Below, piece by piece: positions 45,865-61,200 of a stretch of 64,000 nucleotides of DNA. How positions within the stretch are numbered: the first letter of the stretch is position 1; every line of letters starts with the position of its first letter. The position numbers and the translations under genes were made by a program. Location of the stretch: positions 1 to 64,000 of IMG/VR virus record IMGVR_UViG_3300023174_000036; one strand, given 5' to 3'. Below the pieces are notes generated by a model that searched no databases, was not told where the DNA came from, and worked only from the letters and a program-made list of their open reading frames with translations.

Positions 45865-45874
45865 AAATTTCTCA

Positions 45875-46549
45875 TTAACTCATTATCATACCGTAGGCAG
45901 CGGCCAAAGCCGCGGCATATCCCACGGTAACTGCACTGGAGGCACCTGCTGGTTGTGCTGTCATTCTAACTGTGGTAAATCGACCAGCTAGCGGCGCACC
46001 AAGGCCAACGCTAACATTATTCATACTACCAGTTTGTGCGGGATTAATAGTTACTAAACCAGTACCAGTTGGGCTTATACTGATGTTGGCGTTGTTGCCG
46101 TTAAATGACACGTTGCCGGTTGAAGACAAAATAGTGAATGTTGCAGGTGCTGGTGTTGTTGCTCCAAAAACAACATTATTAATATTGCCAGTCACTGTGG
46201 GATTCACAGTTAGCGTGCCAGTTCCAGTTGGACTGATAACAATATTGGCATTGTTTGGGCTAAAATTCACTGTTGACAATGCTGTCAATCCGTTAAATGT
46301 GCCTGCTGCCGGTGCAATAGCACCAATAACAATATTGTTGATTGCACCAGTAACTGTGGGATTCGCTGTTAAAGAATTAGTCACAGTTAAATCTGTAATA
46401 GTTCCGCTGGTATTAAGAGTTACAGTATTGGTAACTGCATTGGTCGTAACAGAAATGCCGCCAGCTGGCTGAATAGTAAGTGTGTTATTTGTTGAATTAA
46501 GACCAATAGTGGGTTGGCCAGCTACTGCTAAGTAGGTATATCCGTTCAT
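45875..46549 (-). CDS. Fibre-like repeat protein, paralogue
   Basis: ISPTGTG..T.NP...G.INN..G...P..G.F repeats. Confidence 0.7.
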   Translation of the reverse strand: MNGYTYLAVAGQPTIGLNSTNNTLTIQPAGGISVTTNAVTNTVTLNTSGTITDLTVTNSLTANPTVTGAINNIVIGAIAPAAGTFNGLTALSTVNFSPNNANIVISPTGTGTLTVNPTVTGNINNVVFGATTPAPATFTILSSTGNVSFNGNNANISISPTGTGLVTINPAQTGSMNNVSVGLGAPLAGRFTTVRMTAQPAGASSAVTVGYAAALAAAYGMIMS

Positions 46550-47739
46550 ACTGATGCTCCAAGTAGTATAGATTTCAATTGACTCAAGGCTATCAAATAC
46601 TCGCCCTGTGTTGATGTTGATTCTATTGTGATAGTAGTAAATTGTGCTGGCGCTGGAGTTGTTAATCCAATAGTTACATTGTGCATAGCTCCTGGTACAG
46701 CTGGGTTTATAGTCAATGTGCCTGTGCCAATTGGACTAATAGTTATAGTTTGACTATCGGCAAATGTCACATGTCCGTTTGCTGACAAACTACTAAATGT
46801 TCCAGCCCTTGGTGTAGTTGAGCCAACACGTACATTATTAACATTCCCCGGTGTAGCAGGATTAAATGTCACTGTACCGCTGCCAGTTGGCGACATGGTT
46901 ATTTGTTGATTGCCGTCTGTCATAGTGACTGAGCCACTGGCCGACAGTTGTGTAAATGTTCCCGGCTTGTTATTAGTACTGCCAATAGCTACATTGTTTA
47001 AGGCGCCACCACTTGTTGGATTAATAACAAATGAATTACTAATTGCCAAATCAGTAATACTTGTCAAATTAAGTGTAAGTGTATTTGAAGTAGCGTTTGT
47101 TGTAATTGTTAGCGAACCGTCTGTGTTAACAAAATTCATTTTTGAAAATACAAAATCAGACGTTAGTGTGCTTTGTCCAGGAACTACAATATTGTTTATA
47201 GCACTTACTATAATAGACCCAGCATCATCAAGTTCTAAAAAGCCGTTGGGCAAATTAGAATTATTCCAGTTTCTCAACACACCCGCTTCACCGCCAAGAT
47301 TGGTTGCATCGCCCGTTACTGTAGGAATCCCAATAGGATTTAATCTTTCAGAATACGTTGCTTTGAATGTTAATTTGATATCCGCTAATGGAGTAACGCC
47401 ATCTGGTTGAAAATAAGGTGTTGCTATCAGTGTAATTCTTGAATTGTCAGAAGTTGCTGTGAACTTGACTAGATCTATTCCCAAGTTAAGTCTACCATAA
47501 CTCATTACGGATACTTCGTTTACTCGGGCTGAGACTAACAAGTTCACGTGTTCAACATCGTTGACTCCACGCTCGATTACAATCTCGTAAGCCGCTGTTG
47601 AGAACTCGCCTGCCATCCACTGATCAACCACCGTGGTATTAGGCACACGTATTTCTTGCCCTTTAAAGGAAAAATTTGCGCCGTTTCTAAGTTTAAGAGT
47701 GTTTCTTAAACCCTTTATAAAAAAATCAGAAAAGTTCAT
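46546..47739 (-). CDS. Fibre-like repeat protein, paralogue with extra N-terminal domain
   Basis: Same repeat; ATAAATA 47760-47766. Confidence 0.7.
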   Translation of the reverse strand: MNFSDFFIKGLRNTLKLRNGANFSFKGQEIRVPNTTVVDQWMAGEFSTAAYEIVIERGVNDVEHVNLLVSARVNEVSVMSYGRLNLGIDLVKFTATSDNSRITLIATPYFQPDGVTPLADIKLTFKATYSERLNPIGIPTVTGDATNLGGEAGVLRNWNNSNLPNGFLELDDAGSIIVSAINNIVVPGQSTLTSDFVFSKMNFVNTDGSLTITTNATSNTLTLNLTSITDLAISNSFVINPTSGGALNNVAIGSTNNKPGTFTQLSASGSVTMTDGNQQITMSPTGSGTVTFNPATPGNVNNVRVGSTTPRAGTFSSLSANGHVTFADSQTITISPIGTGTLTINPAVPGAMHNVTIGLTTPAPAQFTTITIESTSTQGEYLIALSQLKSILLGASV

Positions 47740-47831: not shown

Positions 47832-48404
47832 ATGGGTCGTTATTCAGAGTATTTCCAAGATATTTGGAAACTGCAAGCAAATCGCAAAGTGTTAGGGTTA
47901 ACACTATTCGGGGTAATTTATGATAATTCAACCCCTTTTACACCAGGTAATAAATTAATAGTAGCCGAAGGCGTTGCTGAAGCACTGTCAATATTGTCAA
48001 AAAAGGGTTACGATTTTTTAATTATTGCTGGACAACCTCCCAGCAAAACACGTAATCTAGATCAAGTGGATTTTGAAAATATCCTTGGTGCAACTCGTGA
48101 ACTGATGCAATCAACAAATTCTAGAATAAAGAATGCCTACTATGCTCCGGGTACAGATAAAAATGACCCATATGTCAAACCCAATACCGGTATGTTTGAA
48201 CGTGCTGGCAGTGAAAACCAGCTGACTTGGGAAGAGATTTATTATGTGGGTGCGGAAATTAATGACGTCAAAGCCGCAACAAAAATGAAAGCAATGCCTA
48301 TCCTTATCAAATCTGCTAGTACAAAAACCAAAGCATTTGAATTAACACATCAAATAAAAGTCAAAGAGTTTGGCAGTTTATTAGAATTTGCTAATTCAAT
48401 ATAA
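47832..48404 (+). CDS. GmhB/HisB-like HAD protein with degenerate active site
   Basis: GVAEAL, KPNTGMF, YVGAEINDVKAA; motif I reads GLTLFGVI instead of FLDRDGVI. Confidence 0.7.
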   Translation: MGRYSEYFQDIWKLQANRKVLGLTLFGVIYDNSTPFTPGNKLIVAEGVAEALSILSKKGYDFLIIAGQPPSKTRNLDQVDFENILGATRELMQSTNSRIKNAYYAPGTDKNDPYVKPNTGMFERAGSENQLTWEEIYYVGAEINDVKAATKMKAMPILIKSASTKTKAFELTHQIKVKEFGSLLEFANSI

Positions 48405-48430
48405 AAAAGGAGCTTAACGCTCCTTTTTTT
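48403..48430. terminator. Bidirectional terminator
   Basis: AAAAAAGGAGC-TTAAC-GCTCCTTTTTTT. Confidence 0.85.
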
Positions 48431-50135
48431 ATACTTCTTCGAAATCACCTTTTTTAGTAATCAGCTTGCCTAATTCTGGAAGCCACATATACTTTAAGTC
48501 TGACTTAGCCAACGTTTCTAATGCCTGCTTGACTGTTTCTACTAGTGGGTCGCCTGCAAGATTAAAACTGGTATTAAACAGGATAGGAACATTTTTAATC
48601 TTGTTGAACTCACTGATCAAATCATAGTAGTGAGAATTTTGTTCTTTAGTTACAGTTTGAATTCTACATGTACCGTCAACGTGTGTAATTGCAGGAATCA
48701 ATGCTTGCTTATCTTCTTTAACATCCACTGCATACATCATAAACGGACTATCACTGCGTGTTCTAAAGTCAAACCACTCGCCGGCATGTTCTGCCATAAC
48801 AGATCCTGCAAAAGGCCTAAACCATTCTCTACGCTTTACTTTGTTAACAATAGCTTTGCCGTCTTGAACTGTTGGATCAAACAAAATACTACGATTACCC
48901 AATGCACGTGGGCCTGCTTCACTGCGACCTTGATACAACGTAACAATATTTCCGTCTGCAATTAACTGTGCAACTTCTGTGCTGGTCACAGACCTTTCTA
49001 AAAACCCAGTGTAGTCAATATTGTCATATCTTTTTTCGTCAATAGGACCAATATACAATGAAGTTAGCGGTGCTGGTGTTGCATCTTCGCTTACAGATCT
49101 ATAAACATGTTGACACACGCCCATGGCATTGCCGCCATCGTGACTGATTGGTTCATGGTAAAACTCAACATCTGGGAATTCTTTCAAGTATTCGTAGTTG
49201 GCAACACAGTTTAATCCAAATCCGCCCGCCATAACAATTTTCTTTTTACCAGTGAGTTCAATAGTTTTACGTATTAGACCAAACACACGTTCTTCAGCGG
49301 CCTTTTGCACAGCATACGCAATGTCTTTACGATAATCTCCAACTAGTGATTCGTCATCATGCCATTCTTTTTTATCATTTAGTTCTAATAAATCTGGATC
49401 TAAATCTGCACGAATAAAGTTACCTGCTGGAAAACGTGGTTTAATAAACGCACGATTGTTGAATCTACCATCATTAATTTTAATGTCTGGATTAGGTTTA
49501 CCATATGGTGCTAGACCCATGGTTTTTCCTGCTTCGATTGGGTGAAAGCCAAGGAACTGTGTCACTGCTTCATATGCTTTAGTAAGGCCGTGACTATCGG
49601 AAATTTCCGATTGGTGACCGTTTTCTTCTAATGCAAAATTATCAGCATGGTTTGCGCCGTATTGCTTGTAATGACACTCTACTTTTGCCGGGTAACCTAC
49701 AGACCAAATTGATTCTACTTCCCAAGTTATCTTTTTAAACTCAGGATCACTGCATCCACTGCCAGCACCATCAATTACCAATGCGGCCGCTTCGTCAAAT
49801 CCACTGTTATAAAATGCAGTGAGTGCATGAGTCATATGGTGTATGTCTCCTGCTGGCACTGTTTGAAATGGGATTCCTGGTTGTTTTTTTCGAACAACTG
49901 ATGTATACACATCTTCCTGATTCCACGGTGTTATAGGAAAATCATTCGATGTTGAACAAATAATCAAGAAATCCACATGATCAGTATATGTAAAAGCAAG
50001 GTCAATACCGGCAAATGGATTACCGTCATATTTGGTTCGTGTTAACCGCTCTTCCTCTACATAAAAAATTAATTCGCTATCTTTATATAGTGCTGTACTA
50101 CCATTGTGACCAATATTGATTCCTAAAAGATACAT
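48429..50135 (-). CDS. Carbamoyltransferase (CmcH/NodU family), full length
   Basis: EEERLTR, HHMTHA, GKTMGLAPYG, EAGPRALGNRS, RPFA, HVDGTCRIQTV, NTSFN. Confidence 0.95.
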   Translation of the reverse strand: MYLLGINIGHNGSTALYKDSELIFYVEEERLTRTKYDGNPFAGIDLAFTYTDHVDFLIICSTSNDFPITPWNQEDVYTSVVRKKQPGIPFQTVPAGDIHHMTHALTAFYNSGFDEAAALVIDGAGSGCSDPEFKKITWEVESIWSVGYPAKVECHYKQYGANHADNFALEENGHQSEISDSHGLTKAYEAVTQFLGFHPIEAGKTMGLAPYGKPNPDIKINDGRFNNRAFIKPRFPAGNFIRADLDPDLLELNDKKEWHDDESLVGDYRKDIAYAVQKAAEERVFGLIRKTIELTGKKKIVMAGGFGLNCVANYEYLKEFPDVEFYHEPISHDGGNAMGVCQHVYRSVSEDATPAPLTSLYIGPIDEKRYDNIDYTGFLERSVTSTEVAQLIADGNIVTLYQGRSEAGPRALGNRSILFDPTVQDGKAIVNKVKRREWFRPFAGSVMAEHAGEWFDFRTRSDSPFMMYAVDVKEDKQALIPAITHVDGTCRIQTVTKEQNSHYYDLISEFNKIKNVPILFNTSFNLAGDPLVETVKQALETLAKSDLKYMWLPELGKLITKKGDFEEV

Positions 50136-50143
50136 AATATTCC

Positions 50144-51067
50144 TTATTTGACTGTTTTCTTGATGTGGGCACGGATGTTGGCAATGATTGTTTTAAGTTC
50201 TTCTTTGCTAAAATCCATAATTGTATCGTTTAATCTATCTGCTTCTTCGCTAGCAAACCCAGCAATTCTAATTGGGCTGTACACACGTTCAATGTTTTTC
50301 TTTTCTACAATATTAAAATGCTCTGGATAGGTAGTGTTAATTGGAAAAGTACTTCCGCACACCACAGTTCCTGGTTTGTCAAATGCATAAGCCATATGTT
50401 GTCCTACGCTGTCACACCCAATGAAATAGTCACTAGACTCAATAACTGCGGCCCATACACGCAATGGCACATTGCCTTCTGGTTGGAACAAGGGAAGATT
50501 AATCACATCTAATTTGTGTTCTCCCATGTAAACCATGTTGTAATCCTTGGCCAATTCGCCCACAAGTTCAATAAACGTACTTTGCTCAATACTGCGACTG
50601 CTTGGATCAAACACAATACCTGGTCCCATACTACTGCTACGGCCAAAAGGCTGAATAACAATTGTTTTTTCTTTTTGGCTTGCTTGGCGCACTTGAGATA
50701 ATATTCCCATAGCACTCATTTCTTCTGTTTTGCTTAATACCAGTGTTGGTTTATTATTCTTTGTTGAACGTTCTCCAACAATTTCCCACCAAAAACTCTG
50801 TTGTAAACTACTGCGTTGATTGTAGTATTCGTGATCTCTATAAGGTTCAGTTGATACACATAAGTTATCTTTGATAAGATTTTCAAACAAGCCTTTGTGA
50901 TTCACATCCCAGGCTTTTTCTTGTAATGTGGGATGTCCAAGGAATATCTCCAAGCCGCCTTCACAAACAATTCCTGCCAACTCGCCTCTGCGATCTAACT
51001 CTTCAAGAGCGGGTATACTAGCAATTACGCGGCCTGCCCCACCATTGATAAACACAACTTTTTTCAT
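50144..51067 (-). CDS. Glycosyltransferase, GT9 (heptosyltransferase)-like
   Basis: IVIQPFG, FIGCDSVGQHMAYAFDKPGTVV. Confidence 0.7.
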   Translation of the reverse strand: MKKVVFINGGAGRVIASIPALEELDRRGELAGIVCEGGLEIFLGHPTLQEKAWDVNHKGLFENLIKDNLCVSTEPYRDHEYYNQRSSLQQSFWWEIVGERSTKNNKPTLVLSKTEEMSAMGILSQVRQASQKEKTIVIQPFGRSSSMGPGIVFDPSSRSIEQSTFIELVGELAKDYNMVYMGEHKLDVINLPLFQPEGNVPLRVWAAVIESSDYFIGCDSVGQHMAYAFDKPGTVVCGSTFPINTTYPEHFNIVEKKNIERVYSPIRIAGFASEEADRLNDTIMDFSKEELKTIIANIRAHIKKTVK

Positions 51068-51125
51068 AATATTCCTTAATCTACGTAGTTAATTATTTAT
51101 AGTTCAAAAAAATGTCAAGGTGCAA

Positions 51126-51908
51126 TTACGAAATATTGTGCTGTTGAATATGTTCAAACAATTTTTCTGCATAAAACATATGTGGCACTTCTGTAAAATG
51201 ATTCATAATTAGCATTTGATCAGGATAATTTTTGCATCCATAATCGTAAAAACTACTAGTATCCAAATTATAATAGTTTTTGCATGAAAAGTCTAGATTT
51301 TTGGTATTAAATAACGGGTGACATGTATTAACAAACAAGTGTGCATATCCTCTATTTTCCAATAATTCATGTAGTGCAATAATCCTGGCTTCCTGATTTG
51401 GAACTTGAAGCACATCATCCCACAAGTATTTGGAGGCCCATGGCACTATACTATTATCAGTATCAACAACATCATCGCCGACTGTGAATGTTATTCCCGA
51501 CTGCGGGTTACAAAATACTACTCCAAAGTCTTGAAATTCGACAGGGTATGACGGATCTTTATTAGTCTTAAAATGATTTAAAACTTCTCTCCAATTGGGA
51601 ATTTTACTAAGCCATGCTTCTCCTGATATTTCAATTCTAGATAATGAGCTCCAACCCACTAAAACAAATGTATCCTTAGGATCATGTCCAGATTTTTCTA
51701 ATTCATTGAGATCAAAAATTGTTCTTTTAAAAATATGATCATTACTTGAACCGTTGTATGATTTATTAATATAAGTGTCACAGTTCAAATAGCGGCTTAG
51801 ATGCTTGGCAAATGAGTGTTCTTTACAAGCAACATCTCTGCTGCCAGGTGCAATAGTTTCCATTCCAAACACAAAACTATCACCATTAGTATACAGTGTT
51901 TTTTTCAT
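51126..51908 (-). CDS. SGNH/GDSL-like hydrolase or acyltransferase
   Basis: LYTNGDSF, GSSN, VGWSSLSRIE, C-terminal HF...H. Confidence 0.6.
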   Translation of the reverse strand: MKKTLYTNGDSFVFGMETIAPGSRDVACKEHSFAKHLSRYLNCDTYINKSYNGSSNDHIFKRTIFDLNELEKSGHDPKDTFVLVGWSSLSRIEISGEAWLSKIPNWREVLNHFKTNKDPSYPVEFQDFGVVFCNPQSGITFTVGDDVVDTDNSIVPWASKYLWDDVLQVPNQEARIIALHELLENRGYAHLFVNTCHPLFNTKNLDFSCKNYYNLDTSSFYDYGCKNYPDQMLIMNHFTEVPHMFYAEKLFEHIQQHNIS

Positions 51909-52624
51909 ATTATATTTTCTCTAATCTTTTTCAATACTTGTCGTTGTCTTCCTGAATGAAAAAACAATTTATACAAGTAAGTTAACGATTTCTTGGGTTG
52001 ATATTTTTTATAATTAACGCATCCTTGGGTCATATTCCATAATTCAGGAGTTAAATCAAACCGTACTAACTTAATAGAGTCCGTGGTATTAAATTTTATA
52101 TAGTACAACGGATCACCCGTTGAAATGTTAAGAGTTTGAAATCTATGTTTCATTTCAAAAGCGCCTTCTATAGGTCTAAACCATTTTGCAATATTAAATG
52201 TTCCTGGAATATATGTACAACTAGATTGAAATTCAGTATTATGTAAAAATGCAGGACTAGTTGTTATTTCTAAATCATCTTCGCAAAAAAATAAGAAATT
52301 ATGATAGACATTAAACATAGGGTTGGAACGCGAAGTTGGTTTTGGTGTAAAATGCTCAGAAATTTCATCTCTATGTCCTTGTTCATTTACAAAAGTTCCG
52401 TTTGAATAGTCCACTGTGAGTTTGCTAGTCCATGGACAACGTACTACAAATGTGTTCTGCACTGATTTTAAAAATGCCGGACAATCCATGTAGTTGTTAT
52501 ATGCATTTTCTTTATTTTTATTGGCTAGCAATTCTTTATATAAACTATCAGGTTCTTGATACAGCATAAAATCATTGCCGTACAAGTCTGGTGGAACTGA
52601 TGCAGAATAGTAGATAGTCTTCAT
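51905..52624 (-). CDS. Hypothetical protein (CPAF...PG.F...GDPL family)
   Basis: ATGA overlap; similar pattern to 53226-53906. Confidence 0.65.
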   Translation of the reverse strand: MKTIYYSASVPPDLYGNDFMLYQEPDSLYKELLANKNKENAYNNYMDCPAFLKSVQNTFVVRCPWTSKLTVDYSNGTFVNEQGHRDEISEHFTPKPTSRSNPMFNVYHNFLFFCEDDLEITTSPAFLHNTEFQSSCTYIPGTFNIAKWFRPIEGAFEMKHRFQTLNISTGDPLYYIKFNTTDSIKLVRFDLTPELWNMTQGCVNYKKYQPKKSLTYLYKLFFHSGRQRQVLKKIRENII

Positions 52625-53229
52625 TATCGAGGAATTTTAATAAACCAACCAGTTAAAATATACTTGTTTTGTGTAAACATAGTATTGCCGCGATGTACAT
52701 GAGTCATCCCTGCTGGCCAAATTACAACGGTTCCGGCTGTAGGTTTAACACGAGTTCGTTGATATAAAAATTCAGTTTCTCCCTCGCCGTCGGGCACATC
52801 ATTTAGATATATCATCCATACCAACTCACGTTGTGACATGTTATAGTTACTACTTTCATAATGCCAAGTGTGAAATCCACCGCTGGGTTCTGTACATTGT
52901 AGTTTTAACTCGCTGGGCCACAGTGGTAATTCTGCTAGCTGTTGATATTTTTCAACATATTTGTCCAGTGCAACCCATAACCAACTTACTACATTTTCTG
53001 CATGTTTATCGTGATAATTCAAAAACCATGCAGAATCGTCTCTTAATAATGGCATACCTTTCTTAATATTATCTTTTGCAGAATGTATAATATTTCGTTG
53101 CATAGTTTTGTTAAGTTCAAAATTTTCAATCAACATTTGACAAAATTCAGCAGGTATAAATCTAGGAAATTCTGCAATAAAATCCTTTTCAGTCATTATG
53201 ATATTATCAAGGTCTATATTATGCTTCAT
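52624..53229 (-). CDS. Prolyl-4-hydroxylase-like 2OG-Fe(II) oxygenase
   Basis: WHYE, IYLND, GETEF, THVHRG, KYILTGW. Confidence 0.88.
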   Translation of the reverse strand: MKHNIDLDNIIMTEKDFIAEFPRFIPAEFCQMLIENFELNKTMQRNIIHSAKDNIKKGMPLLRDDSAWFLNYHDKHAENVVSWLWVALDKYVEKYQQLAELPLWPSELKLQCTEPSGGFHTWHYESSNYNMSQRELVWMIYLNDVPDGEGETEFLYQRTRVKPTAGTVVIWPAGMTHVHRGNTMFTQNKYILTGWFIKIPR

Positions 53230-53906
53230 AGTAGTTTATCCATGTTTCTATATTGCGCGGCAGTGTGCATTTTACTTGCAATCCAATTTCTTAAAACACC
53301 AACTGATTTTTTAATTGGAGAATCCGAATCGTACATTTTTATTTCTGGTTGTTTTTTGACAGCAACTAACTGCATTAATGGTGTGCCTTTTTTCAATAAT
53401 AATTCACCTTCAAATTTTCTTAAAATTATTTGTACAAGAATCATAGGATATTTACTACTGTCAATAATACCCGATGCCACTGTAAAATGAGGAGACTCGT
53501 TATAAAATACCGGAAGGCATAATATTGACGTGTCTTTTTTAGTTCGTACATACCATGGACAACGTAACTTCATAGAGAAATTAAAATATTCTGGTCCAAA
53601 CGAATATCCAGCAAAAGTACGCTCATCGTGAAATTGTATATCTTGGAATGGGTTACCATCGTGGTCAGTCATAGTTCCACTGCCCGAAGCATTGACACTG
53701 TGATCTGGATTAACTGTTATTAGTATGTCTTGCCATAGATTTATCACGTATCCTGTAGAAATTAAATCTCTAATTCCAGGACAACTCATCATTGAATGGC
53801 TTTCTTTTTCAAAAGGCAGCGGGCGTGTAGGACTTGATGCCGCTAATATTGGTTCTATTTTTTCAATTCCTGCTATTATAGGAAAAAACTCAATCTGTTC
53901 ACTCAT
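53226..53906 (-). CDS. Hypothetical protein (CPGI...PW...SGIID...KGTPLMQ)
   Basis: Start moved to ATG 53906 after GAGG. Confidence 0.65.
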   Translation of the reverse strand: MSEQIEFFPIIAGIEKIEPILAASSPTRPLPFEKESHSMMSCPGIRDLISTGYVINLWQDILITVNPDHSVNASGSGTMTDHDGNPFQDIQFHDERTFAGYSFGPEYFNFSMKLRCPWYVRTKKDTSILCLPVFYNESPHFTVASGIIDSSKYPMILVQIILRKFEGELLLKKGTPLMQLVAVKKQPEIKMYDSDSPIKKSVGVLRNWIASKMHTAAQYRNMDKLL

Positions 53907-53909
53907 TAA

Positions 53910-53945
53910 AAACCTCACTGTGTGTTATATAGCACAGTGAGGTTT
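53910..53945 (-). terminator. 13-bp hairpin: terminator that also sequesters downstream RBS
   Basis: AAACCTCACTGTG/CACAGTGAGGTTT. Confidence 0.7.
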
Positions 53946-53964
53946 GTTGTTGCTGTAATACTGA

Positions 53965-54561
53965 TTAAGGTGCAGGTGCGCCAGGTGAATTACTTTCAGC
54001 AACATCTGCTGGTTTAGTAGCGTTTGGATTAGTGTTAACACGTTTAATGCGAACCTCAGTAAAATCAGGATTTTTACGGTCCCAATCTCTACCAAAACCT
54101 ACATTAATAGTGAATGTTTGTCCAACTTCATACCCTTCGCCTGCGTCGTTGATTTCAACACTAACTGCTTTTTCAGTTTGCTGGTCATAAGTTACAGTTG
54201 CAACCAAACGCTTACCGTCACCAATGTCATATTGATTTCTAACTGGTGGTGTTTCGTAGTTAGACCCTGCATTGGTAATTTCTAATTCCAATACTGCTCC
54301 CAGTGGGATAGCAATTGGCTTTGGAGCAGTGTCTGGGGCAGGTGCTTCAGCTGTTTTCTTTTCTCCCCAGGCTGAGCCTGTATACCAAGTTTGTGAACTT
54401 TCTTCAAAAACATTTCCAATTGCCGCATGTTCGTCGGGTACTTGTCTCCAGAATTCTAGTGCATCTGGATGCCATAATCCGTTTGGATCTTCGTCATGAA
54501 GTTGGTAAATTTCAAAATTACCGTCTCCATCGCTATCAACCATTTTTGCCCATTGTGTCAT
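53965..54561 (-). CDS. Hypothetical virion or fibre-assembly protein
   Basis: AGGAG RBS; ITNAGSNY / INDAGEGY repeats. Confidence 0.7.
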   Translation of the reverse strand: MTQWAKMVDSDGDGNFEIYQLHDEDPNGLWHPDALEFWRQVPDEHAAIGNVFEESSQTWYTGSAWGEKKTAEAPAPDTAPKPIAIPLGAVLELEITNAGSNYETPPVRNQYDIGDGKRLVATVTYDQQTEKAVSVEINDAGEGYEVGQTFTINVGFGRDWDRKNPDFTEVRIKRVNTNPNATKPADVAESNSPGAPAP

Positions 54562-54571
54562 TTAAATCTCC

Positions 54572-56197
54572 TTAATCTTTCCAATAAATTATTGCAACGC
54601 CTGAACCTGCGTTACTAACGATGTTGTCCAATATGCATGGTGGAAATGCCAGTGGTGTACTTGCCGCGCCATTACAGCAGTCAAAAGATCCGCCCCAACA
54701 TATACATAAAATATAGCATTTAAACACGCCTGCGCCGCCGCCCAATCCTGCTTTACTTGCAAATCCGTGAACACCAATTCCGCCTGAACCGCCAAATATA
54801 CCAGCTTGGCTGATAATGCCTGGAGCCACGTTCCTTGGTTGATCGTATGCATTGGTAGCACTGCCCTGTAATCCCATTTGGCAAACTGCTTGCCAATCCA
54901 GGAACCAGCCTGGAGTACATGGCCAACCCACGTTGATAGGATCGCACAAGTTAGGATAAACTGCACCGCCGGTGCCAGCACCTTCGCCTGAATCTTCTGG
55001 TTTACCTCCCCATGAACATCCCTGTACCCAATAGTTACCTTGGTCCATTTGTCCGTCTGTACAATAACCTAAACCTTTGCCTGGAGCTCCTGTTCCTGAG
55101 ATAGAAAATACGTCATGCCACGGCCATTTTTTAGGCGCTGTTCCACAGCAAACATCGTGTTCGCTACGGCCTGTACACATACATAATGCGCAAGTCCAAT
55201 ACATGGTATCTGGAATACCTTCGTGATTATCGCAGCCACCGCGACCACCAGCACCTGTTCTCCAAATGCCGCCTTCGCACAAGCCAACCCATAGGGTTTG
55301 TTCGCAACTTGACATTTTTGGTACAAAACGACTGCCACCACCACCACCAGAGATTGTTATACTACATAAGCCTGGTTGACTACTGTTTCCGTACATACGA
55401 CAAATGCAGTTACAACGTGCAGAAATATGGCAACATTTGTTCAAATATCCAATGCCGCCACCGCCGCCTGCCATTGCTCCGCCTTCCGAGCCGCCGTAGG
55501 TACTTTGCTTACTACAAACAGTTCCACCGTTTCCACCGCATGGGTATACAAAACTGCCTGCTGATCCGCCACCTGGAAAATAGGGTACACAATATGCGTC
55601 ACCAACTGAGCTAATACAATTGCAGCCGTAAACTACACAATATCCACAGCAAGTGGTAGGAAATATACAGATACAAGTACTTGGGCATGTGCCATTGACC
55701 TCTTGATAGTTTCGTCCCCATCCACCGCATCCACCGCGACTGTTCATTACGTTGCCGCCTGAACCTGCGCCTGGAGTTCTAGTCACTGCGCCAGCGCCAG
55801 TTAGTGTTTGAGCAACACCACCTTGGCAAGTGTATCCAATAGTGGTATCTTGACTTTGGCGTCCAACTACAATGGTCATAACACAACCAGCTGTCACTGT
55901 ATGCACTGATTCGGCATAGCCACCGCCTGACCCTGCAAAATTACAATAAAAATCACTTACACATGCTTTACCACCACCACCAACTGCAATTGCTCGCACA
56001 CAAGCAGTTGAACTGCCTGCAGTAGTTGGTGGTACAACAAATGTATAACTACCTGGTTTATCTAAAATAACCCTATTTTGCCAGCATTCGTTAGAATCAT
56101 ATGAATATTTGTAATTATTAACCTGGTAGCATGTAGTGGGTGAATAACTAGTGCAAGCCGTTGGCTGTGCTGTTCCTGTACTTATATAACGTCCCAT
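54572..56197 (-). CDS. Cys/Gly-rich adhesin-like protein
   Basis: PGSYTFVVP...VGGGG...GSGGGY; ends GSGVAIIYW; ~45 Cys. Confidence 0.75.
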   Translation of the reverse strand: MGRYISTGTAQPTACTSYSPTTCYQVNNYKYSYDSNECWQNRVILDKPGSYTFVVPPTTAGSSTACVRAIAVGGGGKACVSDFYCNFAGSGGGYAESVHTVTAGCVMTIVVGRQSQDTTIGYTCQGGVAQTLTGAGAVTRTPGAGSGGNVMNSRGGCGGWGRNYQEVNGTCPSTCICIFPTTCCGYCVVYGCNCISSVGDAYCVPYFPGGGSAGSFVYPCGGNGGTVCSKQSTYGGSEGGAMAGGGGGIGYLNKCCHISARCNCICRMYGNSSQPGLCSITISGGGGGSRFVPKMSSCEQTLWVGLCEGGIWRTGAGGRGGCDNHEGIPDTMYWTCALCMCTGRSEHDVCCGTAPKKWPWHDVFSISGTGAPGKGLGYCTDGQMDQGNYWVQGCSWGGKPEDSGEGAGTGGAVYPNLCDPINVGWPCTPGWFLDWQAVCQMGLQGSATNAYDQPRNVAPGIISQAGIFGGSGGIGVHGFASKAGLGGGAGVFKCYILCICWGGSFDCCNGAASTPLAFPPCILDNIVSNAGSGVAIIYWKD

Positions 56198-56332
56198 TTC
56201 TTATGCTTCCTTATAGTAAACAATAGCCATGCCAGATCCAGCATTGCTCAATAAATTATCCAATATGCATGGTGGAAATGCCAGTGGTGTACTTGCCGCG
56301 CCATTACAGCAGTCAAAAGATCCGCCCCAACA
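54627..56332. repeat. 74-bp perfect repeat shared by the two Cys/Gly-rich genes (54627-54700, 56259-56332)
   Basis: Encodes CWGGSFDCCNGAASTPLAFPPCIL in both. Confidence 0.9.
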
Positions 56333-57844
56333 CACGCAAGTGAAATGACATTTGGATGTGCCGCCGCCGCCACCAAAACCAGCTTTGCTGGAAAAGTTAC
56401 AGCCGCCCAATCCACCTGAACCGCCTAGTGTTCCTGCACAAGTTAAGAATCCGCTGAATAATTTGTCCTTTAGTGCATAGGCCGCATCGCATCTGAATGG
56501 ATCTGCCAGTGCGCCAAGACAGCACAGCAATATCCAGTTTACTGAACAAGCTGGACTAGCGTCATTTACTGGATAAGCATCTCCCCATTGGTCTGCATTA
56601 CAACAGCGAAACATTGCGCCGCCTGTGCCAGCGCCTTCGCCTGAGTTTGCTGGACGACCCCAGAATGAACTCAATTGGGTTGGTTCGCAACACCAAAAAT
56701 AATTTGTTTCGTTAACATGACCTGGTGCTCCTACGCCGCTGATGTTACAAATGTCCCACCATGGATATGAGCATGGATCAAAACGTTTGGGATTAAAGTC
56801 AATTTTCCAATGTGCGCAACTAACACCATACGACTCGTTGTAACGACAGCGTTGCCACATGTTCCATCTTGCTGGCTGTGCTTCTGTAGCTTGAGTATTT
56901 GGGCCGCCCAAGCCGCCACAACCGCCCTGCCATTTGTGCATAGTACAAATACCTTCCCAGCTACGACATTGCATAGGTTGCGGAGTGTGACTGCCACCAC
57001 CACCACCAGCACCTGTTGGAGCACAGATTTGCCATAATTGACAATTGCCGCCTACAATTCCGTCATAGCCTGGACATACGCAGTTACAGCAAGTGAACTG
57101 CCAAACGGGTGCTGGACTGCCACCTGCATGTCCGCCGCCCACGCCACCACCGCCACCTGCAGTTCCGCCGTGACTGATAGTTCCTGAATTACAAACAATC
57201 ATGCCGCAACCACCTTGGCAGTGTCGTGGACTACCAGCTGAGCCGCCGCCAGCGTATGCTGCCACGCAACAACCATTTCGGGTATCGCCGTGATCAGCAT
57301 CTGTATATGAAAATACAACACAGTATCCACAGCAAGTTGTGGCATTTTGATAGATACAAGCACCACAATAATGGGTTAGTGATCCGTTACAGAAATTACA
57401 GTTAAAACCAGCACAGCCGCCGCAACTATTCCAGTTACCGCCTGATGCCGCACCTGGTGTACATGCTGCCGCGCCGCCAGCAGTGTGAACGCCTACGCTG
57501 TTACATGCAACTGATGAATCTTGACTCTGACGGCCTACCACAATAGTAAATGTTGTGGCACCTGGAGTAACAGCATGGCATTTGTCGCTGTATGCGCCGC
57601 CTGCTCCAGCAAAACCACAACAGTTTCCGTTGGTACAAACTGGTTTGCCACCACCACCCACAATTACAGTTCTTGCGCAAATAGCATTAGATGGTACTGT
57701 GTATGTATAAGTGCCTGGACGATCATATACTATTTTATATTGCCAGCACTCCTTACCGTCGTAATAAACTTTAGCACCCGGAACTTTTGGGGCTACTTTA
57801 GCAAGATTTTGTGCAGTTATATTAATTGGTACAAAACGTCCCAT
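56201..57844 (-). CDS. Cys/Gly-rich adhesin-like protein, paralogue
   Basis: PGTYTYTVP...VGGGG...GAGGAY; ~51 Cys. Confidence 0.75.
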   Translation of the reverse strand: MGRFVPINITAQNLAKVAPKVPGAKVYYDGKECWQYKIVYDRPGTYTYTVPSNAICARTVIVGGGGKPVCTNGNCCGFAGAGGAYSDKCHAVTPGATTFTIVVGRQSQDSSVACNSVGVHTAGGAAACTPGAASGGNWNSCGGCAGFNCNFCNGSLTHYCGACIYQNATTCCGYCVVFSYTDADHGDTRNGCCVAAYAGGGSAGSPRHCQGGCGMIVCNSGTISHGGTAGGGGGVGGGHAGGSPAPVWQFTCCNCVCPGYDGIVGGNCQLWQICAPTGAGGGGGSHTPQPMQCRSWEGICTMHKWQGGCGGLGGPNTQATEAQPARWNMWQRCRYNESYGVSCAHWKIDFNPKRFDPCSYPWWDICNISGVGAPGHVNETNYFWCCEPTQLSSFWGRPANSGEGAGTGGAMFRCCNADQWGDAYPVNDASPACSVNWILLCCLGALADPFRCDAAYALKDKLFSGFLTCAGTLGGSGGLGGCNFSSKAGFGGGGGTSKCHFTCVCWGGSFDCCNGAASTPLAFPPCILDNLLSNAGSGMAIVYYKEA

Positions 57845-57858: not shown

Positions 57859-58197
57859 TTAAGTTGTACTAGTTTCTATGCCGTATGCTACAGCACTAAC
57901 ACCTGTATTGCTTGCACGTACTGTGATATATTTGTTAGTTGAATCACAAACAATACCAGTACGCTCAAGTACGGAGTTTGCTGGAATAGTAACGTCATAT
58001 TCTAAAAATGCGTTATCAGCAGGAGCAGTGTTACCTGATGCTGATGTAGTTGTTAGTGCAATACGCACCTGGACTGCTGTTGCATTTCTATTACACAATG
58101 ATACGTTAACCACTGCAAATGTTGTTGCAGGGCAAGTATACAAATTTGTGTATGTTGCTGATGCTAAATCAGCGATTCCTAGTCTTCCTGTTGCCAT
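57859..58197 (-). CDS. Small beta-rich virion protein
   Basis: GGAG RBS; LYTCP...VSLCNRN...LERTGIV...YGIE. Confidence 0.7.
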   Translation of the reverse strand: MATGRLGIADLASATYTNLYTCPATTFAVVNVSLCNRNATAVQVRIALTTTSASGNTAPADNAFLEYDVTIPANSVLERTGIVCDSTNKYITVRASNTGVSAVAYGIETSTT

Positions 58198-58212: not shown

Positions 58213-61200
58213 TTATCTTAATAAGAAGTAGTTTAGTGCTAAGGGACTACCATCTACTCCCTGTGTAAAGTTTGCTCTATTCTTTATATTTATCGCCGCG
58301 CCTGTTGTATTACTTATCACATTTCCAGTAATTTGTAAATTACCAGCTACCAACGTATTTACGTTTACTGTAGATCCACCACCACCAATTTGGCTAGCAA
58401 TAAATGTTCTAATTGCTCGCTGTGTTGGTACGATATTGTCACTATTTGCAGTAAATGTACCGTCTGTTGAGAAACTGGTAATACTGGTATTTGAGCTACC
58501 CAGTGTAACAGCACCCAATGTCAGTGTTTGTAATCCGCTCAAGTTAAACGCATTGGCATTCAATGTGGCAATACCAGTTGACTGTTGAACTGTGAACAAA
58601 TCACCCACGTTAAAATTACCATCTTGGTCAGTACTGGTGTAGAACACACGACCACCGTTATTTTCAACAGTTTCGTTGGCCTGATCTGCTGCCTGGGTTG
58701 GTATACCTGGGTAGTTGGTTGTGGCAAAATTACCAGTTCCAATACTTAAGAAATCGTGTCCAGTTAAACGACATTGGCTATACAATATTCGCATGGTAAT
58801 AGCAACACCGTGTACGGGGCTAAGACTAATGCTCATGCTTGGGCTGAGTTGTAGGGCCGCACTGTAATTACCAGTACTACCACTTAAACTACTCACGCTG
58901 ACCAATTTGTAATAAGTTGCATTTCCGGCAAATTGTACGTTTGCACCTGGAGTTGGAACTGACGTCATTCCGCTGACATTTATGTATTGAGTTGTTTGGA
59001 ATATATCAGCAAATCCAACACCAGAAACGTTGGTAGTTGCTGTGGTATATCCAGTTCCTCTGTTGGTAAACGATGGATTACCCAATGCACCAATGCCCAT
59101 ACGCACTGTAAAGGTTGCGGCACTGGTTGCATTTGGATCAGTAATGGTCACCGATGGTGCAGTTGCATATCCACTTCCAGGTTCTATTAGTCTGAAACTA
59201 GCAATTTGTCCCGAAGCAATAACCACACGAGCTTGTGCTGTTGTAAAGTTAGGAATTGAAACTGCATTGGCGCTGGTTACTGTACCGCCAGCAATAACAA
59301 CCCAAGTTGGCAACGCCGCGTTTATCGTTATAGATCCAGTAGTGCTGGTATAGTTATTGCTCACAGTCCATGTACTGCTGGAACTGGTTGCAGTACCTGT
59401 CAAATTGGCCACTATTCTAGTGCCAGCACTGATTCCAATACCATTCAATGTTTGTCCAACCACAATGCCAGATCCAGTTGGAGCACTGGTCACTGTTAGT
59501 GTTGTGCTGGTAATGCTACCAGTAAAGCTGGTTTTTGTGTTACCAAATTCCAGTGCGGCCCATGAATCGTTAGTCAACGCACGACTAGTCCAGTTAATAC
59601 CATCCGGACTGCTTGCGGCAGCGCCCGCGCCAGACACACTGGTCCATGCACCAAGACTCAAATTGGCAATTTGAACAATTGGAGTCAGTGTTGCGCTGGT
59701 ACTTAATGTAACTTGATTATTAACAGGATCAACTGTGGCAATATAGTATGTTGTGCCTGAAGTTAATCCGCCCAAATATGAACCAGCTGTGGTTGGCACA
59801 GAGCCGCCAATGCCTGGAGCAACTGTGATACTATCGCCAAGATAACTTGTACTAATAATCAACTGGTTTGTAGCACTAAGAATACCAGTAATATAATAGT
59901 TGAAACTTGCACTTAGAGATGTTGCCAAACTGCCTGTGCTGGTGTCGCTGATTTGAGTAGTCCACTGTGCATTTCCTGCAGATCCACCATTTTGTAGTGT
60001 GATAACTGGTGTTAATGTTGGTGAAGCACTGACTGTAATATTAGCACCTGACACACTGGCCACATAATATAAGCGGCCGTTTACTAGTCCAAACTTGTCG
60101 TCAATACCAGTAGTCCATGCATCGTTACCGTTGATTAGTGTGGCAATTGGGCTTAATGTTGGACTTGTACTCAAACGCACATAGTTTCCGCTTGCACTTA
60201 CAGCCGCAACATAGTAAGGAGTACCTGATGTTAAGCCACCAAAGCCTGCGGCAAACGATCCAACAAAGCTACCTGCTGTTGTACCGCTGGTAAATGACAC
60301 CGCATTTCCAAAGTATGTTGTACTGACAGCAATCTGGTTAGTGCTTGGAACAGTTGCAATCACATAATATGTTGTGCTGTTGCTTAAACCACCAAATGTT
60401 CCGCTTGCTGGAGTAGTAAACTGTTCACCATCTTGTATGTGTCGAACACTATTCACTACCATCAAGTTAGCAGTACCTGTAATTGTTGTACTGGTTACGT
60501 TTGGACCTGTAAAGTAGTTAACTTGCCATGTTCCGCCAGCGCCAGTAATGCCGTTGATGTTGGAAACAATATAAGTTGGCTTGCTGATCACACTACCTGA
60601 AGTAATCATACTGCCAGTAGTGGTGTTTAAATAGCTGACTGTTGTTGCACTAGATGCTGTAACTACAAAAGTTCCGTTGTATCCAACAGGAGTTACACCT
60701 TGAATAGTAATCAACTGTCCAACAATTGGAGCAGTGGCACTTGAGAATGTAATAGTGGCTGTTGTGCCGTTACCACTGGTTGCTGTAACTGCATAATTTT
60801 GTGCAATTGGTATATTTGTACCAGTTAATATCATGCCTGGGAACGGTGCGCCAGCTGACACTGTTAATACACCAGCAGTTGATATTGTACTAGTAGTCAT
60901 ACTAGTTGTCTGTTGACCTAGTGTACTACCAACTGTTACTGATACAGCGTCAGTGACTGGTGTAATAACTTGTCCAACTGCGGCACTTACACTGTTGCTT
61001 AAACGTGCCCAGTTACCGCCTGATGCAGTTTCAAGAATAGTGGTAGTTGCGCCTCCCAGCACGTCACCTGCTCTAACAAGCCATGCACCGTTGGCATTTG
61101 TCAATGGTAATTCTGGAGTTAGAGTTGGGCTTGAGCTGAGTTTTACATAGTTACCAGTGACTGCTGTGACATAATAAACTGCGTTGGCCACATCGCCTGG

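Follow-up and report, generated by a model that had tools for sequence, protein, structure and literature searches.

Cysteine-loaded phage proteins with a predicted tail-fiber-tip fold and the glycosyltransferase-like gene that accompanies them

Tail fiber gp24 of the cyanophage Pam3 (PDB 7ypx/7yfw) carries a TNF-like plus glycine-rich receptor-binding domain (Pfam PF21722, Gly_rich_2). It has been reported to resemble the gp38 adhesin of phage S16 (PMC9608196), and disulfide-linked fibers have been documented in Pam3 virions (PMC9942802). The gp38 adhesins of T2 and S16, with their polyglycine-II sandwich, are encoded just after the distal fiber gene. On the enzymatic side, the bacterial autotransporter heptosyltransferases TibC and AAH share the CAZy GT9 family with the LPS heptosyltransferases WaaC and WaaF; TibC, a GT9-fold enzyme, provides a precedent for the cytoplasmic hyper-heptosylation of an adhesin (PMC4358343). 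Genes of this kind are also found in the so-called LPS gene clusters of cyanophages P-SSM2, S-SM2, and S-SSM7, whose function is stated to be unknown (PMC3037559). The locus described here lies in a 356-kb T4-like, cyanomyovirus-related phage. The analyzed window is the first 64,000 nucleotides of IMG/VR record IMGVR_UViG_3300023174_000036.

Two Cys-rich paralogs in a tail-fiber module

A first-pass annotation, made from the sequence alone, noted two glycine-rich paralogs of about 545 aa with about 45 and 51 Cys residues and a set of tailoring-type enzymes encoded next to them; this observation is confirmed, and the hand counts of Cys were exact. The first protein (CysA, positions 56201 to 57844, minus strand) consists of 547 aa with 51 Cys and 97 Gly; the second one (CysB, 54572 to 56197, minus strand) consists of 541 aa with 45 Cys and 105 Gly. 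The CC, CxC, and CxxC motifs are found 8, 3, and 5 times in CysA and 4, 6, and 2 times in CysB. The two are 40 to 45% identical, and 24 Cys positions of CysB align with those of CysA. Given that the genome-wide mean is 1.09% Cys over 408 open reading frames (ORFs) and that the neighboring structural proteins contain 0 to 4 Cys, a content of 8 to 9% is an extreme outlier. CysA and CysB belong to an unannotated family of 134 clusters, in which all 111 full-length members carry 39 to 56 Cys. A-type and B-type copies are conserved separately and in tandem in the related loci that are long enough to show both.

The AlphaFold2 model of CysA (pLDDT 83.8, pTM 0.85) combines a TNF-like domain with a glycine-rich one. 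Its structural matches are the Pam3 fiber (7ypx_A; Z 10.9 over 177 residues, 23% identity), the Bxb1 tail tip (9d93; Z 9.6), and the TNF-like/glycine-rich domain of ALK (7nx3; Z 8.6). A search of BFVD returned 140 hits, mostly to entries named “Glycine-rich domain-containing protein.” Relatives of CysA reach the PF21722 threshold, although CysA and CysB themselves do not.

The genes upstream of this pair also point to a tail-fiber module. The long fiber gene (58213 to 63933, minus strand) encodes a protein of 1906 aa, although the frame may extend to the end of the window. The C-terminal 370 aa of its product match phrog_9851, “tail fiber protein,” at E = 2.8e-44, and its C-terminal domain is 47 to 72% identical to the products of fiber genes that precede the module in S-CAM1, P-SSM2, and the IMG/VR loci. 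Between this gene and CysA lies the gene for a small conserved protein, p112 (57859 to 58197, minus strand), a possible adapter or assembly factor that matches phrog_11338, “tail fiber protein,” at E = 7.6e-6; its homologs (41 to 93% identity) hold the same slot in nearly all related loci and in S-CAM1 and P-SSM2. CysB is followed by p198 (53965 to 54561, minus strand), whose N-terminal part is conserved after CysB in the related loci long enough to show it. The PHROG hits of p198 to Ig-like repeats of virion proteins are weak, and a search of the Atlas gave leads only (0.84 to 0.86), one of them to Phage_tail_APC; its assignment as an assembly chaperone or accessory protein is only a weak possibility. 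A hairpin with a 14-bp stem followed by a T run (53910 to 53945), a predicted terminator, separates these genes from the enzymes downstream.

A variable enzyme island and a conserved GT/carbamoyltransferase pair

The genes downstream of the terminator, encoded on the same strand, are as originally described, with three nuances. The two hypothetical genes, p230 (53226 to 53906) and p239 (51905 to 52624), which had been listed as related, are only remotely so: BLASTP gives E = 0.06, although both hit phrog_7084, p230 at E = 5.8e-29 and p239 at E = 1.1e-3 (p239 matches phrog_17480 at E = 1.7e-22). The p230 protein is DUF6065-like; it probably starts at the ATG at 53906 rather than the GTG at 53918, as the Atlas holds this protein from residue 5 on, where its neighbors are viral, some carrying DUF6065. 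Between the two lies a gene for a P4H-type 2-oxoglutarate-Fe(II) (2OG) oxygenase (52624 to 53229, minus strand), which matches PF13640 at 42 bits (cut-off 27) and phrog_61 at E = 1.3e-42, contains an HxE...H triad, and in this form is found only in the closest relatives. The p239 gene is followed by one for an SGNH/GDSL-like protein (51126 to 51908, minus strand) that matches PF19547 (DUF6071) at 28.4 bits (cut-off 27) and has an N-terminal GDS motif. Homologs of the latter are found in 11 of 33 island-bearing loci, and a second GDSL-like family is found in 20. The 2OG, SGNH, p230, and p239 genes belong to a variable island and are not conserved partners of the Cys-rich proteins.

The island is followed by a T4-type late promoter, TATAAATA (51094 to 51101, minus strand), located 26 nt upstream of the start codon of the glycosyltransferase (GT) homolog GT307 and followed by an AAGGA ribosome-binding site. 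The same octamer lies within 100 nt upstream of the GT gene in 27 of 78 distinct loci, against a background of 0.0076 per 100 nt. The GT307 gene (50144 to 51067, minus strand) has 2046 homolog clusters. Its GT9 assignment, the second nuance, is weak by sequence (12.8 bits against a cut-off of 22; PF01075 scores below the threshold) but clear by predicted fold. The AlphaFold2 model (pLDDT 84.6) matches the GT9 structure 3tov (Z 20.9), TibC (4rap; Z 19.7), WaaF (Z 18.2), and WaaC (Z 17.4), being as close to the protein heptosyltransferase TibC as to the LPS enzymes, whereas other GT-B folds score 12 or less, 5 Z units lower. The D219/H224 motif aligns with the DxxxxH nucleotide-sugar motif of WaaC, but the position of the catalytic Asp (D13 in WaaC and D110 in TibC) is occupied by an invariant Arg, R13, so that the protein may use a different mechanism or may not be a transferase. 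It might instead be a pseudoglycosyltransferase, a noncatalytic assembly factor or chaperone that handles Cys-rich fiber tips and possibly still binds a nucleotide sugar; a GT9-like fold also serves as a structural subunit in the chloroplast NDH complex (7wff_a; Z 17.6), and the neighboring HAD protein is itself a pseudoenzyme in this lineage. This possibility appears unlikely, given that about 20 residues, including the nucleotide-sugar motif, are invariant down to 25% identity and that the tight coupling to a carbamoyltransferase and sugar-nucleotide genes suggests real sugar chemistry.

The NodU/CmcH-type carbamoyltransferase (48429 to 50135, minus strand) matches PF16861 at 206 bits, PF02543 at 76 bits, and phrog_1601 at E = 1.8e-156, is 47 to 49% identical to the S-CAM1 and P-SSM2 enzymes, and in most loci is encoded 3 to 30 bp after the GT gene. 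It is not specific to Cys-rich proteins: it is found in many cyanophages that lack them and in about 118 phage records without the GT. A predicted bidirectional terminator hairpin (48403 to 48429) separates it from the convergent gene for an HAD-IIIA (GmhB-like) protein (47832 to 48404, plus strand). NCBIfam GmhB models match this protein at E = 9.5e-14 but far below the cut-off (51 against 178 bits). As the third nuance, its catalytic motifs have been lost: motif I reads GLTLFG where distant homologs have GLDRDG, and motifs II and IV are also degenerate, so this is probably a pseudophosphatase. A split HldE-like kinase and nucleotidyltransferase, a cupin, and two epimerases are encoded elsewhere in the genome, at 335.3 to 338.5 kb, but no GmhA was found and the GmhB-like protein is catalytically degenerate in this lineage, so a heptose donor is uncertain.

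Co-occurrence of the GT9-like gene with Cys-rich proteins

The gene order fiber, p112, CysA, CysB, p198, island, GT, carbamoyltransferase recurs in the related IMG/VR loci long enough to show it; in four apparent exceptions, the GT gene is about 12 kb downstream. Co-occurrence of the Cys-rich proteins with the enzymes, which had been proposed as a test of their relationship, proved strongly positive for the GT9-like gene. Across 93 GT loci, 33% of the ORFs within 6 kb upstream have at least 4% Cys, against 2.7% elsewhere. A Cys-rich ORF is found within 9 kb in 24 of 26 IMG/VR GT clusters at 70% identity and in 12 of 13 at 60% identity; two clusters, designated L068 and L080, have no Cys-rich neighbor. 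The Cys-rich partners range from triplets of about 260 aa to a 1392-aa protein with 145 Cys.

The same association is seen in the cultured cyanophages P-SSM2, S-CAM1, and S-SSM7 and, independently, outside this group. In the N4-like Vibrio phage SBP1, the GT-like gene is followed by one for a 925-aa tail protein with 41 Cys, and in Aeromonas phage HJ05, it is preceded by one for a 559-aa protein with 23 Cys, while other neighbors have 0 to 6 (most 0 or 1). In contrast, cyanophages P-RSM4 and Syn9 lack the GT, and their glycine-rich tip proteins have 0.5 to 2.5% Cys. Among isolates, detectable homologs of the Cys-rich proteins are found only in GT-positive phages.

These data bear on the possibility that there is no functional link, i.e., that the Cys-rich tip genes and the GT/carbamoyltransferase pair are simply neighbors inherited together in one phage lineage, with the Cys residues serving only as structural disulfides or metal ligands in an extracellular adhesin. 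Indeed, most of the 93 loci belong to one broad group of related T4-like phages with a shared backbone, so much of the synteny is inherited. Virion disulfides are documented in Pam3, some Cys columns covary in pairs (for example, 114-252 and 152-192), and a complex prediction for CysA with the GT gave no answer and no support for a link. However, the adjacency persists at 25 to 50% GT identity and through replacement of the Cys-rich gene type, and it holds in Schitoviridae and in an Aeromonas phage. In addition, even and odd Cys counts are equally frequent (57 against 56), so Cys residues are gained and lost singly, and the variable ones are exchanged with T, N, Y, S, and Q. This is not the pattern of obligate buried disulfide pairs and argues against a strictly paired, all-disulfide design. 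A mere neighborhood appears doubtful but possible.

A comparably tentative alternative is that the GT, the carbamoyltransferase, and the sugar-nucleotide genes are LPS-type auxiliary genes that remodel host envelope glycans, for example, to block superinfection or to stop progeny from sticking to debris, and lie beside the fiber genes only because that slot is a recombination-tolerant island. This is the historical reading of the homologous clusters in P-SSM2, S-SM2, and S-SSM7 (PMC3037559). It is consistent with the classical role of GT9 enzymes in acting on LPS cores, with the JGI annotation of some homologs as LPS heptosyltransferases, and with the variability of the adjacent island. However, it does not explain why the GT tracks hyper-Cys tail proteins in unrelated phage families and across very different Cys-rich architectures, or why GT-negative cyanophages have Cys-poor tips. 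Furthermore, the late promoter places expression with the structural genes, and the acceptor-activating Asp of the LPS enzymes is replaced.

A predicted fiber-tip modification system and its closest known counterparts

The most likely explanation, held with moderate confidence, is that the region is the distal tail-fiber module of this phage and that the GT9-like enzyme decorates the fiber tips. In this view, CysA and CysB are an anciently duplicated pair of receptor-binding tip proteins, each with a TNF-like β-sandwich from which extend long glycine-rich loops laced with about 50 Cys residues, mostly at polar positions, and their genes would be transcribed with those of the 1906-aa fiber, p112, and p198 up to the terminator. 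The phage would make a nucleotide-activated heptose-type sugar, which the GT9-like enzyme would transfer onto the Cys-rich proteins in the cytoplasm late in infection, as TibC and AAH heptosylate autotransporter adhesins, and the carbamoyltransferase would then O-carbamoylate the sugar. The Cys residues might provide the acceptor or recognition context or, alternatively, cross-link and stabilize the tip after release into oxic water. What the analysis establishes is the composition, family, fold, synteny, and co-occurrence of these proteins, the promoter and terminator elements, and the active-site substitutions; the presence of CysA and CysB in the virion, their modification, the activity and substrate of the GT, the identity of the sugar, and the chemistry of the Cys residues (disulfide, metal, or S-glycosylation) are all inferred, and no virion proteome of a GT-positive phage was found in the papers that could be read.

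The first-pass interpretation, which envisaged glycine-rich, gp38-type polyglycine-II adhesins modified by the neighboring enzymes on the fibers rather than on DNA, is partly supported. The predicted fold, the position directly after the fiber gene, and the co-occurrence with the GT agree with it, whereas the specific relationship to gp38 was not recovered. Phage GT-B enzymes can glycosylate DNA (cited in PMC12619734), but DNA modification is very unlikely here: the GT/carbamoyltransferase pair has a late promoter, which fits virion morphogenesis better, and lies inside the tail-fiber module, the fold is specifically GT9, and the association is with tail proteins, not with nucleotide-metabolism genes.

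Among the known systems, the cyanophage LPS clusters encode homologous GT, carbamoyltransferase, kinase, nucleotidyltransferase, cupin, and epimerase genes, but in this phage the sugar-nucleotide genes are not adjacent to the pair, being about 70 kb away around the likely circular map; no link of those clusters to Cys-rich tip proteins turned up in the papers found and read. Unannotated “hypothetical proteins” of P-SSM2 (gp304 and gp306) and S-CAM1 (SXBG_00224 to SXBG_00226) hold the same slot between the fiber/p112 homolog and the GT/carbamoyltransferase pair, followed by the GT (39 to 42% identical), carbamoyltransferase, and heptose genes. They are also Gly-rich and Cys-loaded (25 to 36 Cys in about 300 aa), have PF21722 hits, and show a profile-profile match to the CysA family (85% probability, E = 6e-6 over the core motif), but they are only about 280 to 355 aa long, are too diverged for BLAST, and occur in two or three copies. 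Compared to TibC, AAH, WaaC, and WaaF, GT307 shares the GT-B fold of GT9 (Z 17 to 21) and the DxxxxH motif but has the invariant Arg in place of the catalytic Asp and lacks the N-terminal β-barrel, β-hairpin thumb, and 4-Cys iron finger. Similarly to gp38, CysA and CysB are glycine-rich motif proteins encoded after a fiber gene, but gp38 was not among the reported structural matches, there is no sequence match, and the middle domain is TNF-like rather than a β-helix. Pam3 gp24 remains the best structural match: both proteins have a β-sandwich with stacked GGGG-type loops and the C-terminal G-x-G-x-V-x-I-x-Y strand, and both genes lie at the fiber tip. However, CysA and CysB are twice as long (about 545 aa against 250 to 280), lack the N-terminal helical shaft, carry 45 to 51 Cys, and occur as a conserved A/B pair.

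Predicted fold and cysteine content of CysA and CysB

The window is the first 64 kb of a 356,312-bp IMG/VR virus record, estimated to be 96% complete, which is that of a T4-like myovirus. It encodes a 1,089-aa sheath, a gp15-like sheath stabilizer, and large virion structural proteins, and several of its genes are 40 to 56% identical to those of Kyanoviridae cyanophages. No psbA gene was found in a search of the phage's own genome.

The first-pass annotation described two cysteine-loaded, glycine-rich paralogues followed by a cluster of tailoring-type genes, and this observation proved to be correct. On the minus strand, positions 56201-57844 encode a 547-aa protein with 51 Cys and 97 Gly residues (CysA), and positions 54572-56197 encode a 541-aa protein with 45 Cys and 105 Gly residues (CysB). 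The two proteins are 40 to 45% identical, and 24 of their Cys positions align. By comparison, the mean Cys content over the 408 ORFs of the genome is 1.09%, and the flanking structural proteins contain 0 to 4 Cys residues.

Searches of Pfam, PHROGs, and NCBIfam returned nothing for CysA or CysB. Similarly, megablast of the 10-kb region and tblastn of CysA against 50,697 phage records found no relatives, as these are too diverged and were found only by position and composition. A word search, however, identified 134 clusters of relatives. All 111 full-length ones have 39 to 56 Cys (median, 47) and 16 to 20% Gly; in CysA, 15 Cys residues are near-invariant and 36 are shared by at least half of the family. 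CysA and CysB gave no hit to the glycine-rich domain family PF21722 (Gly_rich_2) even at an E value of 10, but three members of their family (P0003, P0004, and P0110) scored 31.2, 26.5, and 25.4 bits, against a gathering threshold of 24.3 bits. The family profile found nothing among PDB sequences.

An AF2 model of CysA, built on 58 sequences, is confident (pLDDT 83.8, pTM 0.85). Foldseek against PDB gave only marginal E values, at best 1.1e-3, whereas an exhaustive structural comparison with VIA-align placed the Pam3 tail fiber gp24 first (7ypx_A, Z 10.9), followed by a Bxb1 tail-tip protein (9d93_Qa, Z 9.6) and the TNF-like plus glycine-rich domain of ALK/LTK (7nx3_A, Z 8.6). The alignments use both the N- and C-terminal strands, consistent with a TNF-like beta-sandwich carrying a lattice of extended glycine-rich loops. 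A search of BFVD returned 140 hits, mostly annotated as "Glycine-rich domain-containing protein" of uncultured tailed phages, with Syn9 gp38 and an S-CAM3 protein also among them. In Pam3, this domain is the distal, receptor-recognizing end of the fiber (PMC9608196), and Pam3 virions carry functional disulfides between fiber and baseplate (PMC9942802). Accordingly, CysA and CysB are concluded to be very likely fiber-tip proteins, of this fold class but about twice the usual size and uniquely rich in cysteine. The more specific relationship to the S16/T2 gp38 adhesin (polyglycine-II sandwich on a beta-helix domain), whose type was invoked in the first-pass annotation, was not recovered: gp38 is absent from both the Foldseek and the VIA-align lists.

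The role of the cysteines was approached through three indirect tests. Cys counts are even in 57 family members and odd in 56, so that cysteines are gained and lost one at a time. A few column pairs (114-252, 152-192, 366-385, and 75-469) co-vary strongly, which is compatible with some paired cysteines but is confounded by phylogeny. At variable Cys columns, the alternatives are mostly T, N, Y, S, and Q, which are polar, surface-type residues. Together, these results argue against a design in which every Cys sits in an obligate buried disulfide and leave room for surface thiols, stochastic cross-links, metal sites, or modification sites. A search of the phage's own genome for an Erv1/ALR sulfhydryl oxidase found none, but the Erv1 control gave no signal anywhere, so this result is uninformative.

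CysA family members share one additional feature, a near-invariant N-terminal MGR[F/Y] motif (M1 and R3 at 99%, G2 at 96%). In this genome, only CysA (start codon at 57844), CysB (56197), and the HAD-like protein discussed below (47832) start this way; a fourth ORF of the 408 starts with MGRP. In the loci encoding the glycosyltransferase-like (GT) protein described below (the motif was noted in loci L055, L062, L066, L071, L076, L087, and L109), 32 of 163 Cys-rich ORFs start with MGR, and so do 23 of 934 others, all of them 188 to 245 aa, which is HAD-like in length. In some lineages, a Q/P-rich linker separates this tag from the HAD domain. It may be a docking or recognition tag.

Gene order, signals, and predicted enzymes

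In the related IMG/VR loci long enough to show it, the gene order is fiber C-terminal domain, p112 (a small conserved protein), A-type and B-type Cys-rich proteins, p198, a variable stretch, the GT, the carbamoyltransferase, and usually HAD and p397-like proteins. Four of 21 loci seemed to lack the GT within a 10-kb flank but have it about 12 kb downstream (L060, L069). The C-terminal domain of the 1,906-aa fiber (residues about 1565 to 1904) recurs in two other genes of this genome, at 68152-69201 and 197237-198259, with 53% and 32% identity, respectively; related loci also carry two fiber genes with this domain. At the other end of the module (45088-47739, minus strand), p397, p224, and p258 are three tandem paralogues that share a repeated domain (35 to 48% identity), are Gly rich (9 to 12%), and have no cysteine. 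They are conserved downstream of the HAD gene in related loci and are probably further fiber or whisker proteins.

The downstream gene list of the first-pass annotation is correct: p198 is followed by p230, a PF13640 oxygenase, p239, an SGNH/DUF6071 protein, a GT9-like protein, a carbamoyltransferase, and a convergent HAD-IIIA gene. However, p230 and p239, described there as two related hypothetical genes, are at best remote paralogues, as BLASTP of one against the other was not significant. A hairpin with a 14-bp stem and a T run follows p198. The GTG start called for p230 (53918) lies inside this terminator hairpin (53910-53945); the ATG at 53906, where the Atlas record begins, is the likely start. 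A bidirectional terminator separates the carbamoyltransferase from the HAD gene. A T4-type late promoter, TATAAATA, lies 26 nt before the GT start codon, together with an AAGGA ribosome-binding site. This octamer is not enriched in the window as a whole (3 found against 4.5 expected), and only its conserved position before the GT gene is meaningful: it occurs within 100 nt upstream of the GT gene in 27 of 78 distinct loci, against a background of 0.0076 per 100 nt. On this evidence, the enzymes are late genes with their own promoter. A scan for sigma-70 promoters was at background level.

The AF2 model of the 307-aa GT (pLDDT 84.6) matches GT9 structures far above other GT-B folds: 3tov (Z 20.9), TibC (Z 19.7), WaaF (1psw, Z 18.2), and WaaC (2h1f, Z 17.4), with the next GT-B fold at 12.0. 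By sequence the assignment is weak, with PF01075 scoring 12.8 bits against a cutoff of 22 and NCBIfam heptosyltransferase III matching at an E value of 4.9e-5 over 45 residues only. A profile alignment pairs the invariant D219 and H224 with the C-terminal nucleotide-sugar-binding DTGLSH motif of WaaC (D261...H266). In contrast, the invariant R13 (motif GGxGR) is placed opposite the N-terminal catalytic D13 of WaaC, whose equivalent in TibC, D110, is the catalytic base (PMC4358343). The GT aligns only to TibC residues 97 to 391 and lacks the N-terminal beta-barrel, beta-hairpin thumb, and 4-Cys iron finger of the BAHT (TibC/AAH) protein heptosyltransferases; only one of its Cys residues (C218) is conserved. 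A complex prediction for CysA with the GT scored 0.11 against a mark of 0.32, which counts neither for nor against binding.

The carbamoyltransferase is a clear NodU/CmcH-type enzyme, with both the Carbam_trans_N domain (76 bits; cutoff, 24) and the Carbam_trans_C domain (206 bits; cutoff, 27) above threshold. A 315-aa ORF at 10525-11472 (minus strand) shows 23% identity to its N-terminal (Kae1-like) half. The convergent HAD protein (47832-48404, plus strand) belongs to the GmhB-like HAD-IIIA group but scores only 51 bits against a cutoff of 178 for the GmhB equivalog. Its motif I, which should provide the DxD nucleophile, is GLTLFG instead of GLDRDG, motif II is AGQPP instead of S/T-NQGG, and motif IV is VGAEIND instead of VGDxxxD, so that only KPN is kept. 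The protein is nevertheless conserved at 60 to 99% identity across the lineage, whereas distant homologues in other GT loci are canonical; it is probably a pseudo-phosphatase. A search of the phage's own genome for GmhA (SIS_2) found none.

At 335.3-338.5 kb of the genome (L130, positions 3348-6498, minus strand) lies an operon of an SDR epimerase, a PfkB kinase, a cytidylyltransferase-like protein, a cupin, and an SDR epimerase, flanked by LysM-lysozyme, GH19-like, and M23 peptidase genes. It is homologous to the genes that follow the carbamoyltransferase in S-CAM1 and P-SSM2; the cupin is the gene annotated as "cysteine dioxygenase" in those phages.

The PF13640 oxygenase of the window is of the P4H type (42 bits; cutoff, 27), and has an HxD/E...H triad, with H-Y-E and a distal H-V-H seen in the sequence. 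In 33 loci of this lineage, the stretch between the tip genes and the GT carries 2OG oxygenases (PF13759 in 29 loci and PF13640 in 25, mostly on the opposite strand), GDSL/SGNH-like proteins, and, in a few loci, a tryptophan halogenase and a luciferase-like monooxygenase. In Syn9 (locus L129, record positions 28855-43144), the Cys-poor glycine-rich tip proteins gp36, gp38, and gp39 are followed directly by two tryptophan halogenases and an array of 2OG dioxygenases; these arrays were noted previously (PMC2938197). Enzyme islands after the tip genes may be a general feature of cyanomyoviruses. The window's 2OG, SGNH, p230, and p239 genes are therefore accessory, typical of the slot but not conserved partners of the Cys-rich proteins. 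Several further 2OG oxygenase-like ORFs lie at 7.6-8.5 kb and 15.8-16.1 kb of the window.

Association of the GT9-like gene with cysteine-rich tail proteins

Co-occurrence of the Cys-rich proteins with the enzymes, which had been set as a test in the first-pass annotation, provided the main result. In S-CAM1 and P-SSM2, the slot between the fiber/p112 homologue and the GT homologue holds two or three unannotated proteins of 278 to 356 aa with 25 to 36 Cys and 14 to 18% Gly. Two of the five hit PF21722, and their profile matches the core motif of the CysA family at 85% probability (E = 6e-6). Among isolates, GT homologues occur in S-SSM7, S-SSM6a, S-CAM1, S-CAM3, Sf-FS3, P-SSM2, P-SSM5, and AG-345 viruses, and detectable homologues of the Cys-rich proteins occur only in those same phages.

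In IMG/VR, at least 569 stretches encode GT relatives. In 93 fetched loci, 33% of the 428 ORFs of at least 150 aa within 6 kb upstream have at least 4% Cys, compared with 2.7% of 634 ORFs elsewhere in the same loci. After clustering of the GT at 70% identity, 24 of 26 clusters have a Cys-rich ORF within 9 kb; at 60% identity, 12 of 13 do. The partners differ widely and include triplets of about 260 to 300 aa, single proteins of about 500 aa, the 540-aa pairs, and giants of 755 to 1,392 aa with 79 to 146 Cys. Nine of 25 sampled partners hit PF21722. In eight IMG/VR loci (L084, L087, L101, L102, L104, L113, L117, and L119), giant tail-fiber-like proteins of 1,091 to 1,392 aa with 118 to 146 Cys (about 10% Cys and 8 to 10% Gly) end 78 to 543 bp before the GT gene.

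The association extends to phages unrelated to cyanomyoviruses, in which GT-like genes at 25 to 28% identity sit beside Cys-rich tail proteins. In the N4-like Vibrio phage SBP1 (L058, 8001-11522), the GT-like gene is followed by a 925-aa tail protein with 41 Cys, and in Aeromonas phage HJ05 (L059, 6309-8924), it is preceded by a 559-aa protein with 23 Cys, among neighbors with 0 to 6 Cys, most with 0 or 1. Neither phage appears among the carbamoyltransferase hits. Controls without the GT behave differently: P-RSM4 has the carbamoyltransferase, and its 33%-Gly tip protein has 2 Cys, while Syn9 gp36, gp38, and gp39 have 0.8 to 2.5% Cys. The association is therefore between the GT9-like gene and cysteine loading, not between the carbamoyltransferase and cysteine loading. 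Simple co-inheritance of neighboring genes nevertheless remains a live alternative explanation.

Interpretation and comparison with known systems

The interpretation offered in the first-pass annotation, modification of the fibers rather than of DNA, is only partly supported. Composition, modeled fold, gene order, sequence signals, active-site substitutions, and co-occurrence come directly from the analysis, and fold, position, and predicted late expression make a tail-tip role for CysA and CysB very likely; presence in the virion, trimeric tip assembly, receptor binding, and any modification of these proteins are inferred. That the GT9-like protein acts on them is the reading that best explains the cross-lineage association and the controls, and it has a mechanistic precedent in TibC, but it remains an inference. 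Given the Asp-to-Arg change, the degenerate HAD, and the failure to find GmhA in the genome, the sugar donor, the acceptor atom, and even catalysis can only be presumed. The classical reading, in which these genes act on host LPS, also remains a live alternative, whereas DNA modification is unlikely.

A more far-reaching possibility, unlikely on present evidence although not excluded by it, is that the GT9-like enzymes with the invariant Arg in place of the acceptor-activating Asp form a new class of protein glycosyltransferases. They would attach a phage-made, subsequently carbamoylated heptose-type sugar to cysteine thiols (S-glycosylation) of the tip proteins, which would be new chemistry for phages and would give many aquatic phages a chemically unusual, enzyme-written receptor-binding surface. 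In this view, the MGR[F/Y] tag shared by the tip proteins and the HAD-like protein would be the docking or recognition signal of the system.

The "LPS gene clusters" and enzyme islands of T4-like cyanophages have had no assigned function since 2005 to 2010, and one paper asks whether they are merely "stuffer DNA" (PMC3037559). The present analysis ties their GT9-like core gene, in several phage families, to a previously unnoticed class of hyper-cysteine, glycine-rich tail-tip proteins, which makes the question accessible to direct experiment in phages already in culture (P-SSM2, S-CAM1, and S-SSM7). If the tips are enzymatically decorated, host recognition in abundant aquatic phages would depend on post-translational chemistry as well as on sequence, and a new branch of GT9-fold protein-modifying enzymes would be revealed. 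Literature searches on cyanophage cysteine-rich or glycine-rich tip proteins, heptosyltransferase, and virion glycosylation found no description of this association. The components themselves are of known kinds, namely, the glycine-rich tip domain, the GT9 fold, and the NodU-type enzyme; what differs from the known systems is the hyper-cysteine form of the tip protein and its tie to a GT9-like enzyme with an altered active site.
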